This document shows, in pieces, positions 11,550 through 16,700 of a stretch of DNA of 64,000 nucleotides; the stretch's first letter is position 1; each line of letters starts with the position of its first letter. Made by a program: the position numbers and the translations under genes. Under the pieces are notes generated by a model. It ran no database searches. It was not told the origin of the DNA and worked only from the letters and a program-made list of their open reading frames with translations. This stretch comes from Paragordius varius. Its lineage: Eukaryota; Animalia; Nematomorpha. The stretch lies in contig OZ176053.1 in assembly GCA_964247055.1 (NCBI GenBank), positions 3,410,001 through 3,474,000 of the forward strand, written 5' to 3'.

Positions 11550-13730
11550 TTAAATGTGTTCCCTTTTAAGTTTTAACAAGGCTTTCATTTGCCGTGCTAA
11601 TTTATCTCTAGCCGTCTGTATGCCAGATAATGGAATGAGTTTTTGAAGTTGATTGGATATTTTATGGGAGGTTGTGCCTTCATAAAGCTTAGGGCGTTCG
11701 AATGTATCACTAACTTGTTTGATAGTTTTACTGTATTTTTCACAATAATCATCCCAACCTACGAAATCACACATAATAATACCGATTCAATTTAGTATTA
11801 ACGCTTAAATTTTGTTAAAATGTAAATAACCAAGTGAGAATTCATTTTTATTTTTGGACATTTTTTCTGTTCTACTATTCAATTTTATCATTATTAAAAA
11901 ATTATTATCCAAAAATTCAAATGTTATAAGCAAAGTTTCATTTTAAGCGCGCTGGTTCAATAAATTTAATGCAAGTTTAAGCGTAAATATACATATAAAA
12001 ATGATTAAAATTTCCTAATCATTTAGAAAATGCAGTTAATATTTAAAATACCATTGGCATTAAGGTAGGCTATTTGAAAGGGGCCCAGAAAAGCCCAACG
12101 CAAACACAATCCATCAGACATAACTTTATCCACATCTTTAACCGTTAAAATGTCATTCTATCCATTTAGTTAAATAAATTTTAGAAAATATTTTGTCCAA
12201 TAAATATAATAGGGTATGGAGGATTATTACAACCAATTCGTTTTAAGATGTAGTTAAAAAATGGTAAAATATATGTTAAAATAATAATTAAAAAATTATT
12301 TTGGGGATGGCTATTCTTAACATTTCTTTATTTTTATATAATTTGTGGGATTACATTTATAGCGATACTAATTAAATTTTATTTTTTATCATCATGAAAT
12401 ATGTCGGCAATTAATTTAAGCGATTTCACAAAAAAAATAAAAATATTTGGTAGCTATAAGGTTAGAATACATATTAATTTTATTGTTAGAAGAGGTATTT
12501 TTTTATGCGCCACACAAAACATAAAATGCATATTATTAATTTAGGTTAATTTCATCAGTATATTGGAAAAAATTCTCATTAAATTTGTTCTGAAGTAAAA
12601 TTCACTTAAAAGGGAGTAAGTGTAGCTAATTATCAAACAAAAATTTAAAATCACAAATTATTGTAGTAATTAATTACATTGACCAAATTGTAACATTCAT
12701 TAAGGATGGCATATTGAAGTCGATTAACAATGAAACCGGGTATTTCTTTGTGCAAAACTATAGGTTCCTTTCCACATTGGCCTATAACATTTTTCATTGT
12801 GCCTACTACATCGGAGTCAGTCCATGGTGCTGGAACTATTTCCACGATAGGTACCACATTGATTGGATTAACCTATAATTACAATTGCTCTAAAACAAAA
12901 TATTGCTTTTTCATAAGAAAAATATATTTTAAATTGATCTAGAAAAATGGGCGCCCAAAATAATTATATAAAACAAATTTTCAAGGGCAAATTTAATATA
13001 AAAAAAGTTCTTTATATTTACATCATTTCTTTTAAACAACATATTTAAACGGATATTGACTAAAAGTTTGAAATTCTAAACTCCCAAAAAATCGATTTGG
13101 AAAATTAGAATTCATTTATTCTCTTTTCTAATATTTTTAAAAAGATGATACAAATAAATTTTTTTCTTGTATAAATTTATATATTTATTTTTAAAATTTC
13201 CAATGTATATTATTATAAAAAGAAATTGTTAAAAAATAAATATAGTTTGCTCTGTTATTACTGGATGACAAACTATCATTCGATTTTTATGCTTGAGATT
13301 TTGCGACAAAAGCGAAGGAAGCAATGTACTAGTAGATGAAGATAATATTTGATGAGATTGCATAATGGGATCCACCAATTCGTAAACACTGCGTTTAATT
13401 TCCAAACGTTCAGGTACACATTCCTAATATGATTACCAACAAAACAAAACTTGAATAATAAAAGCCCCTTGAATATGGACCTTGATATCAGTTTGTGGTA
13501 TTATGCGGCTCATTATTTCATCAACCTGAATATTGTCGTGAATTTTAGAAGCCTCTATCAAATCATGTTTAACATTTTCTATGCATTTGTTAATTTGTTC
13601 GGGTAAAGCATCATAAATGTGCACTATATATCCATTTAATGCGTACATTTCGGCATAAGATTTGCCAATTATACCACTAAAATTAGAGTACTTTATACCT
13701 CCCTATTATTGCAACTATTTTATTAGTCAT
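11550..13730 (-). CDS. CRYL1: Lambda-crystallin homolog / L-gulonate 3-dehydrogenase (3-hydroxyacyl-CoA dehydrogenase family)
   Basis: Exons 13730-13699, 13676-13451, 13423-13262, 12872-12678, about 12167-12052 and 11758-11550. Motifs: Rossmann IIGSGIIG, IQECVPE, ILSSSTS, HPVNP, VEIVPAPWT, PGFIVNRLQYAILNE, GLCLRWAFLGPF. Confidence 0.9.
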
Positions 13731-13791
13731 TCTGACCTTTGCTTAAACTCAATGCGTAAAATTCATGGATTCATAACATCAGAGGTAAAAC

Positions 13792-16700
13792 ATGCCGTTC
13801 GCTAATCAACCGAGTATAAATATTACAGAACTTACAGATGATAATGTGAAGTTTTCTATAGAAGATACTGATTTAAGGTAGATTTTATTATATTTTAAGC
13901 ATGGCCAATAGTCTGAGACGTGTCTGTATTGCAGAAGTCCCAACTTTAGGTAATAAATATAAATTAAAGTATAGCTATTGATTGGGTTCAAATTGACGCA
14001 AATAGTTCTGTTTTACATGATGAATTTATTGCACATCGTTTGGGATTGATACCATTAACATCCGATGATATTGTCGATAAACTTCTTTACTCTCGAGTAA
14101 AAATTTATTGATATATACATACATTAATATAAACATATTTATAATTTATTTATACTTAACGTGTCGGAAATGATGCTGGGATTTTATTAATTAAATCCTC
14201 TTTTTTACTCTAACTTAAGTCCTCTATTGTGCAAAACTAGCACTCAATAGGTTTACCGAAAAGGTTTTTTCAGTTGTAAGTTTATATAACTAAATACCGC
14301 CTCCATCTAATTATTTTGAACCTTAAAAAGGGGTCAAGGCCAGGAAATTTTCGAATTCCCTAATGATTAAATTTATTTTCTAATTATAGAGTAAGATATC
14401 TTAAATATATTGTATTGTTAAAATTATTTTAATTTAGAGGTAGAAAATTTAAAAGTTAATTATTACTCCTTGGCTAGCATTTAGCGCCAGCGCAGCCTGG
14501 ATGATTGGAGATTATAATTGGATTTTGTTCGCGTTTATAAAATTTATTGGTAATGTGTTTCAATATTAAAATTTTTATTCTATGATAATTTTTCCATAAA
14601 ATAAGTATTGAGTTATAAAACCACGATGATTATTAATTACATATTAACATTTGTTTGTGTTACAGTTTGACGAAAAATGCATTGCTTTTTTTTCATTAAT
14701 TATTGCCACATAGCATATACAGTAAATAGATATATTATTGGCTTACACAGTTTATGTTCGCTTTTATGTAAGTCCGTATTAACTATTTTTTTAACAAATA
14801 CTGACAAAAATATGAAATAGTTGATTGATGTGTTTTGTGACTGTTACTCGGTATGATTTAATATAGTGCTATCGGTGATACAAGTATAATTCATAAAACC
14901 TACGCATATTTATTTCAATATACTATTATTTTTCAATATAAGTGCCGCGGAAATTTCTATTTCATCCTTTAACAAACCATGGAATCTGATTCATATAATT
15001 TATATTGATCCAAAATAATGAAATCAGTTCATTTACTTGATTGATTTTGCCACTAGAGGGTTTGAGAGACGGAATGACAAATATGAATATATAAAAAGTT
15101 AAGAAAAGACCTTAGTTTAATACAAGTTGTGAAACTGTTTAACAACATTAAATTTACGAATTAAAGGAAGTTACAAAAAAAGTAAACAGAAAAAATTCTC
15201 CTTCTGGAATACGAAAACAAATTTTACTCGTTATTAGAATATTCATCTAATCCAAATAGTTTTTTTACTATTGAAATATATAATACCCAAAAATATTAAG
15301 TTTGGATCAACATCTAAAAATGAATAAAAAACATTTGGTTAACTAGATTTCAGGTTGATTACAGAAGTTAATGGACAGGAAATCTCAGTGGCTATATTGA
15401 GTAAAAATGTTACATTGAAATAAATACATAGATTCCATGAATAACACTGATATTATCGATAAAAGTTGGCTATTAGAGATATAACATCTCTTTCTCTCTA
15501 ATCTTATTAGTGCTTAAGGGGAAAATATTAATAAAAATTCTACAAAACTTATGCGAGGAAGCAGCCATAGTATTTGCATAGATAGCGAGTATATTTTGTT
15601 TTGCTTTAATTCCTGTTTAATTCTTTTTTGGCAACTTCTTTCTAATCGTGACTTTAGTGTTAGTGAACATTGTTTAAATTTGTTTTTACTTTCTTCTCTA
15701 ACTTATCTGCATACTCTGTATGCAAAATTGCCAATATATTGAGATTATTTACGTTTCTTCATACATTTTACGCCAAAGCTTCCCTGGCTCTTATCTCGTT
15801 TAGCATCTTATAATAAATTCCATTCAAGGATAATAAATTGTTGCGTATTTAAAATGAAGTTTATAAAATGGAGGATTTTATAAATTTTGGAACGAATGAC
15901 TTTAATAACATAGTATGAGGATGATTTTTGATGATTGTAAGAAAACTAAAACAATATTTTTAATATATTTATTGTCTATAAATCATGTTATTATCTCAAT
16001 ATTATTATTAATATATATATAGTGTTAGAAATTTAAAAAAATGAAATATGTAAATTTTTTTAAGGTTATGAAATGCTAAATTTGCTAAATATTTGAATCA
16101 TCATGACATCAAATAAATTTAAAAAAATATAGTTAAAAAATTGATGTCTGCCTAGTTTTTCTTAAAACTTTGGTTTCTCCATGTATCTAAGATTATTAAA
16201 TTTTTGAAAAATTCAGATTTGTAAAAGCAGTTTTACTCACTTGTAAAGATAATTGTCTCTCAATCCATTTTAGAGAATATAAAAACTATTAATATTTTTC
16301 ATGTTATCTTACTTTGAAGCTATAACAAGTCTAGACTCATAATGAAAAATGTTAATAATGTAATCAAAAAAAAGCAACAGGCACATAAGTGCATAAGTAG
16401 CATTGGTGCAAATATAGATTGATCAGTCAGGGTAGAATCGAATAATTATAAAAAAATTAAATACTGAAAATAACATCCTAACTAAAAAACATTTACCCAT
16501 ATAGATTTTTTTAGGGAGAGCACCATCTCCAGAAAACAAAAGTTCAAAAAGGAAGTTTTTTTTAAACATATGGTAGTCATAAACGTAATATCAACTCACA
16601 GATATTAGTACTATTTTATTGGAGTGATGTAATTGCAAAATATTATAATTTGTTATATTTTTGTTTTTTTACATGATTACATACAGTAAAAATCGATATT

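Follow-up and report, generated by a model that had tools for sequence, protein, structure and literature searches.

Four GT-AG segments of 22 to 27 nucleotides in CRYL1 and POLR2C of a hairworm-related ecdysozoan are very probably minimal spliceosomal introns

The window analysed here, a stretch of 64,000 nucleotides (nt) of contig OZ176053.1 (positions 3,410,001 to 3,474,000) of the Paragordius varius assembly GCA_964247055.1, contains the genes CRYL1 and POLR2C (RPB3) on opposite strands and, farther along, IARS1. The coding sequences of CRYL1 and POLR2C are each interrupted close to the start by two very short segments bounded by GT and AG, and a similar segment is the first intron of IARS1 (Table 1). 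Here, we show that the conserved proteins encoded by CRYL1 and POLR2C are recovered upon removal of the four segments, and we conclude that these are very probably constitutive spliceosomal introns of the U2 type (GT-AG), reduced in this lineage to a minimal size of 21 to 33 nt.

A preliminary description of this DNA had reported the four segments, 22 and 27 nt long in CRYL1 and 22 and 25 nt long in POLR2C, and had proposed that the first of them splits a Rossmann motif and that the protein frames are restored only by their removal. All of this was confirmed. All four lie where they had been described and have GT-AG ends, and CRYL1 intron 1 interrupts a Ser codon in phase 2, between the IIGS and GIIG parts of the motif. 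Translation through any of the four reaches a stop within 1 to 10 codons; retention of the 27-nt CRYL1 intron 2 causes no frameshift, but its in-frame TAA stops translation. After removal, the exons of both genes are collinear with their homologs without gaps. The spliced CRYL1 coding sequence of 930 nt encodes 309 amino acids and that of POLR2C, 828 nt long, encodes 275 amino acids, with frames that are otherwise intact; mammalian RPB3 is likewise 275 amino acids long. Homology searches were run exon by exon, and joined pieces were translated solely for frame checks. The Pfam profile 3HCDH_N runs on continuously over CRYL1 exons 2, 3, and 4 (profile positions 8-82, 84-137, and 138-179), and 13 to 16 residues precede GIIG in full-length CRYL1 homologs, to be compared with the length of CRYL1 exon 1. 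In POLR2C, exon 2 accounts exactly for the 18 residues missing between RPB3 residues 28 and 47. IARS1 exon 1 corresponds to residues 5-40 and exon 2 to residues 42-93 of the cytoplasmic IleRS 9w01_B. In the window, a random segment of 22, 25, or 27 nt has GT..AG ends with a frequency of 0.0016, so the chance of finding them at all four segments is about 7e-12.

Table 1. Exons and introns of CRYL1, POLR2C and IARS1, given as positions of the window
Feature	Position	Strand	Properties
CRYL1 exon 1	13699-13730	-	ATG at 13730; 10 codons and 2 bases of a Ser codon
CRYL1 intron 1	13677-13698	-	22 nt, GT-AG, phase 2; within the Ser codon between IIGS and GIIG
CRYL1 exon 2	13451-13676	-	NAD-binding Rossmann part; Pfam 3HCDH_N positions 8-82
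CRYL1 intron 2	13424-13450	-	27 nt, GT-AG, phase 0; in-frame TAA inside
CRYL1 exon 3	13262-13423	-	Pfam 3HCDH_N positions 84-137; 70% identity to Gordionus residues 88-141
CRYL1 intron 3	12873-13261	-	389 nt
CRYL1 exon 4	12678-12872	-	Pfam 3HCDH_N positions 138-179
CRYL1 intron 4	12158-12677	-	520 nt
CRYL1 exon 5	12052-12157	-	
CRYL1 intron 5	11759-12051	-	293 nt
CRYL1 exon 6	11550-11758	-	stop codon included
POLR2C exon 1	13792-13877	+	RPB3 residues 1-28 in PDB chains
POLR2C intron 1	13878-13899	+	22 nt, GT-AG, phase 2
POLR2C exon 2	13900-13949	+	50 nt; 16 codons and two split codons
POLR2C intron 2	13950-13974	+	25 nt, GT-AG, phase 1
POLR2C exon 3	13975-14096	+	39 of 40 residues identical to RPB3 47-86
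POLR2C intron 3	14097-17008	+	2,912 nt
POLR2C exon 4	17009-17189	+	
POLR2C intron 4	17190-17524	+	335 nt
POLR2C exon 5	17525-17693	+	
POLR2C intron 5	17694-17798	+	105 nt
POLR2C exon 6	17799-17836	+	
POLR2C intron 6	17837-17936	+	100 nt
POLR2C exon 7	17937-18118	+	
IARS1 intron 1	33008-33029	-	22 nt, GT-AG, phase 2; gene ATG at 33145

A comparison with a related worm places the two CRYL1 segments at the sites of orthologous introns. In a full-library search, CRYL1 exon 2 had one real relative, a protein of the horsehair worm Gordionus sp. m RMFG-2023. Exons 2 to 6 align to residues 1-87, 88-141, 142-206, 209-241, and 243-303 of this protein with identities of 38, 70, 75, 82, and 61%, respectively, compared with 29-61% for the next best animals. 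The Gordionus gene (XP_065314914.1, locus L011) shares all five intron positions and phases with CRYL1 of the window, and its first exon terminates at the same AG/GT as CRYL1 exon 1; a partial Gordionus isoform in the public record begins exactly at the exon 2 boundary. Thus, both CRYL1 tiny introns match orthologous introns in position and phase. The Gordionus introns at these sites measure 24,668 and 3,472 nt, versus 22 and 27 nt in the window. The 24.7-kb intron 1 of Gordionus also contains an additional copy of CRYL1 exon 1 (L011:11593-11628), which differs in its last base. In the window, the start codons of CRYL1 and POLR2C lie back to back with a spacer of 61 nt (13731-13791), and therefore both promoters and 5' untranslated regions must overlap or be extremely short. 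POLR2C was not found within 4 kb upstream of CRYL1 in Gordionus.

Both proteins examined for the affiliation of the host point in the same direction. Besides CRYL1, a single-exon DIRAS-like gene had its best sensibly named match in Gordionus (297 bits, 64% identity; others at most 271 bits). Judged by these protein sequences, the host is an ecdysozoan whose nearest relative in the database is the horsehair worm Gordionus (Nematomorpha), and it is neither a myxobolid nor a dicyemid, as Gordionus is the nearest named relative for both. The list of DIRAS-like matches is topped by an unnamed protein (P0123) from an assembly of the ostracod Cyprideis torosa, which at 315 bits scored above Gordionus and all arthropods; this may be due to chance or to foreign DNA in the ostracod assembly. 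The assembly containing the window comprises 110.6 Mb in 44 contigs, about half the size of published nematomorph genomes, which are quoted at 200 to 300 Mb (preprint 10.1101/2024.06.11.598342).

An independent view of the locus came from a DNA run (X5) of another organism from another study, about 4% divergent, whose contigs were aligned to the locus. One of its contigs spans 13388-13771 and differs there by two substitutions, without any gap; this organism therefore keeps both CRYL1 tiny introns at the same length, intron 1 unchanged and intron 2 with one substitution. Its contigs also carry the pair of POLR2C tiny introns with no length change listed; intron 1 has substitutions at 13889 and 13897 and retains the terminal AG. 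Ten of the 14 listed exon differences between the two organisms are synonymous, all ten at third positions of the spliced frames, and all three differences in POLR2C exon 2 are synonymous third-position changes. No joint skipping the tiny introns was seen in this DNA run. These comparisons bear on the possibility that the segments arose as errors of assembly or sequencing, or that CRYL1 and POLR2C are decaying pseudogenes with small insertions. It is true that small insertions and deletions can arise in AT-rich DNA of long-read assemblies, but nothing specific points to such errors here, and an artefact would have to recur at the same length in both CRYL1 segments of an independent run, to produce GT-AG ends in every case despite the small chance given above, and to fall on the intron sites of the Gordionus gene. 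Predominantly synonymous exon differences and frames that remain intact over 275 and 309 codons likewise argue against artefacts and pseudogenes, and we consider this explanation extremely improbable.

The second DNA run bears equally on the idea that the segments are excised from DNA rather than from RNA, either in the manner of the internal eliminated sequences of ciliates or by somatic programmed DNA elimination. The eliminated sequences of Paramecium are similar in size to the tiny introns, and some nematodes eliminate DNA. Ciliate-type internal eliminated sequences are bounded by TA and removed from DNA, but the segments described here have GT..AG rather than TA..TA ends, coincide in position and phase with ancestral introns, and occur in the DNA contigs of both organisms, with no skipping joint in the DNA run. 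Excision at the DNA level is thus very hard to credit.

Three RNA-labelled runs (X6-X8) carry the same species label as the DNA runs. They matched the locus only at 12677-12746, over 70 nt and with about 86% identity, and this low similarity indicates that they stem from a divergent animal. The matching contig represents an abundant CRYL1 mRNA, and its unmatched end runs on into the homolog of exon 5. The exon 4/5 junction of CRYL1 (12677/12678) is thereby confirmed in a relative, whereas no joint at any of the tiny introns came from these runs. The species label of these runs probably covers more than one species; mislabelling of this sort was reported in a preprint on the hairworm genus Chordodes (10.64898/2026.02.03.703548).

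To gauge the extent of the tiny class, a Pfam Ras profile search of the whole assembly was used to collect introns from small-GTPase (Ras-family) genes located on several contigs. Where neighboring matches were collinear, frame, stops, and expected residue count served to resolve the intron between them, and harder cases were read by eye. This gave a sample of 33 introns; about ten more long gaps stayed outside the count. Splicing of the pieces restored the canonical GTPase motifs (G1, switch, G3). Tiny introns accounted for 18 of the 33 (21, 22, and 23 nt, three each; 24 nt; 25 and 26 nt, two each; 28, 29, 31, and 33 nt), 16 of them no longer than 30 nt. A middle class comprised seven introns of 53, 58, 67, 71, 74, 80, and 86 nt, and a long class comprised eight of 254, 306, 693, 734, 893, 956, 1,081, and 1,392 nt. 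Allowing for the additional long gaps, the share of tiny introns is about 40 to 55%. The SF1 locus, in which two introns were read, has lengths of about 110 and 380 nt.

The combined set of 23 tiny introns (21 nt, three; 22 nt, six; 23 nt, three; 24 nt; 25 nt, three; 26 nt, two; 27, 28, 29, 31, and 33 nt) begins abruptly at 21 nt, peaks at 22 to 23 nt, and tails off to 33 nt, followed by a gap up to 53 nt. A ruler-like class at 22 nt, as proposed in the preliminary description, is not what these lengths describe: with the mode near 22 nt but a range of 21 to 33 nt, a hard floor, and the gap to 53 nt, they correspond to a class of minimal introns. In CRYL1, POLR2C, and IARS1, the three genes of the window, tiny introns occupy the first one or two intron positions. 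The class as a whole is not limited to gene starts, since five tiny introns are spread over the whole domain of a Rab-like gene (C5:5361143-5361730) and another intron, of 31 nt (C3:8849629-8849659), comes after an interval of about 1.4 kb between Ras profile matches. A Ral-like gene contains a tiny intron of 24 nt (G000:C2:9616887-9616910) that is in frame and free of stops, so that its retention would add eight residues and it is detectable by homology alone; an alternative acceptor giving an intron of 18 nt is also compatible with the frame. A test independent of homology, in which GT..AG segments joining two long stop-free stretches were sought, was dropped as uninformative because a TG..GA control yielded more segments than GT..AG.

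The spread over many genes also bears on handling by routes other than the spliceosome, either excision of the IRE1/tRNA-ligase type, as in XBP1, or ribosomal bypassing or frameshifting. The XBP1 intron, removed by the former route, is 23 to 26 nt long and hence close in size to the segments. IRE1-type excision is specific to one gene and requires twin stem-loops, whereas the tiny introns, with their GT-AG ends at conserved intron sites, are spread over many unrelated genes, and the in-frame stops within the segments would block bypass-free translation. A non-spliceosomal route is therefore a most unlikely explanation.

Splice signals of the tiny introns are sparse. Among 21 of them, the third position is occupied by A in 13 and by T in 8, T stands at -3 in 17 and at -5 in 17, and T makes up 47% and C 5% of all bases. 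A yTrAy motif is present in fewer than half of these introns. Regarding the machinery, it had been suggested that introns of this size may imply an altered spliceosome, with changes to be looked for in snRNAs and splicing factors. The small nuclear RNAs (snRNAs) U1 (ACUUACCUG), U2 (GUAGUA), and U6 (ACAGAGA, AGC) are full length and retain the canonical sequences that recognize the 5' splice site and branch site or take part in catalysis; U5, SF1, and the U2AF large subunit are encoded in the genome as well. At the level of snRNA sequences and factor presence, nothing indicates an altered spliceosome, and that suggestion is not borne out. It appears that the ordinary major spliceosome would remove the tiny introns by intron definition, guided by much reduced signals: the 5' end reads GTA or GTT, the 3' part is rich in T and closes with TAG, and there is no constant branch motif. 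In that case, the distance between the 5' splice site and the branch adenosine would not exceed about 15 nt.

Signals as weak as these could also mean that splicing of the tiny introns, though these are real, is inefficient or conditional and that transcripts retaining them are degraded after an early stop, so that the introns would act as a throttle on expression. Such a role would fit the early stop that follows retention of each of the four segments, and very short microsporidian introns were reported to be spliced with a median efficiency of about 25% (cited in PMC13644364). POLR2C and IARS1, however, have essential housekeeping functions, roughly every second intron of the sample is tiny, and the Rab-like gene has five tiny introns in a row. 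Because low efficiencies multiply over many tiny introns, inefficient splicing would be crippling, and we regard this alternative as unlikely.

Constitutive splicing of the four segments as minimal introns has to be set against several points that weigh the other way. Their excision is inferred rather than observed, and no indexed RNA run contains the locus. A conserved branch-point motif was not found in the 21 tiny introns. GT-AG ends were a criterion of the search, so the Ras-family sample is blind to introns with non-canonical ends. For the two tiny introns of POLR2C, no orthologous gene structure was found for comparison. Even so, we hold with high confidence to the interpretation of the four segments as constitutive minimal introns.

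Tiny introns coexist with long ones in the same genes, as had been noted previously: POLR2C has the 2,912-nt intron 3, and IARS1 has a 60-nt intron after its 22-nt intron 1 as well as an intron of about 2.4 kb. The additional statement that the long introns are filled with transposable elements proved too strong. The 2.9-kb intron of POLR2C consists of unique sequence apart from a single dispersed palindromic repeat about 250 nt long, and the other introns of CRYL1 measure only 293 to 520 nt. The repeat (16709-16968) resembles a miniature inverted-repeat transposable element, matches both strands, and ends 40 nt before the acceptor of POLR2C intron 3. Out of 2,138 first-look candidates from the assembly, at least 40 copies with 74 to 80% identity were scored. 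Open reading frames in the 2.4-kb intron of IARS1 contain a Tc1-like motif, recognized by eye only; Pfam gave no match in these reading frames, and a transposase is proposed from the eye-read motif alone. Elsewhere in the window, two long overlapping reading frames on the minus strand (51659-55628) are of the long terminal repeat retrotransposon type, with Pfam matches to protease and reverse transcriptase followed by RNase H and integrase. The window is AT-rich, with a GC content of 23 to 31% over most of its length and 33 to 40% in the retroelement at 52-56 kb; in CRYL1 and POLR2C, GC content is 36% in exons and 23% in introns.

Animal introns shorter than 30 nt were long regarded as annotation errors. 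They are now known only from two parasitic lineages, Myxobolidae and Dicyema, and more cases were predicted (PMC13644364, September 2026). Our literature search found ultra-short animal introns only in myxobolids and dicyemids and nothing linking Nematomorpha with short introns, and their occurrence in this lineage is probably unpublished. To the lineages with ultra-short introns listed in the preliminary description, namely ciliates, nucleomorphs, and dicyemids, myxobolid myxozoans have to be added (PMC13644364). On balance, we lean towards the view that a hairworm-related ecdysozoan lineage independently collapsed about half of its introns to 21 to 33 nt while keeping kilobase introns, transposons, and canonical snRNA recognition sequences. 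If so, this would be the third animal case and one in a genome that is not compact, with introns of up to 25 kb at some of the sites in another hairworm. It would further show that the floor of about 30 to 40 nt for metazoan introns is not set by the conserved snRNA core. The contrast is sharper than in the known cases, with tiny and kilobase introns within one gene and orthologous sites differing 1000-fold in length, and this contrast between related worms brings the minimal length for metazoan splicing within reach of experiment. On the practical side, standard gene finders and aligners with a minimum intron length of 20 to 50 nt will truncate or break a substantial fraction of the gene models of this genome.

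The closest parallels are found in the myxobolids Henneguya salminicola, Thelohanellus kitauei, and Myxobolus rasmusseni (PMC13644364), animals whose GT-AG introns have a median or mode of 22 to 27 nt. Likewise, they combine reduced 5' (GTa) and 3' signals and conserved intron positions with canonical U2 and U2AF. Myxobolids, however, are cnidarian parasites with compact genomes, in which short introns neighbor short introns, whereas the host of the window is an ecdysozoan related to hairworms. Unlike in myxobolids, intron lengths here form three groups (21-33 nt, 53-86 nt, and hundreds to thousands of nucleotides), and tiny introns stand beside introns of 0.3 to 2.9 kb in one gene. Dicyema japonicum, likened here by its published description, is similar in being a parasitic bilaterian with introns below 30 nt, conserved intron positions, and weak motifs (Lu et al. 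2019, PMC6736024; PMC13644364), but it belongs to the Spiralia, and both its genome and its body are strongly reduced. The reduced signals of the tiny introns resemble the "GTa ... AG" pattern of both myxobolids and Dicyema (PMC13644364).

As in ciliates and the chlorarachniophyte nucleomorph, the tiny introns form a narrow AT-rich class with a hard lower bound and GT-AG ends. Minimal introns are about 25 nt long in Paramecium, 15 to 16 nt in Stentor, and 18 to 21 nt in the Bigelowiella nucleomorph. In those unicellular systems nearly all introns are short, whereas in the genome described here at most about half of them are.

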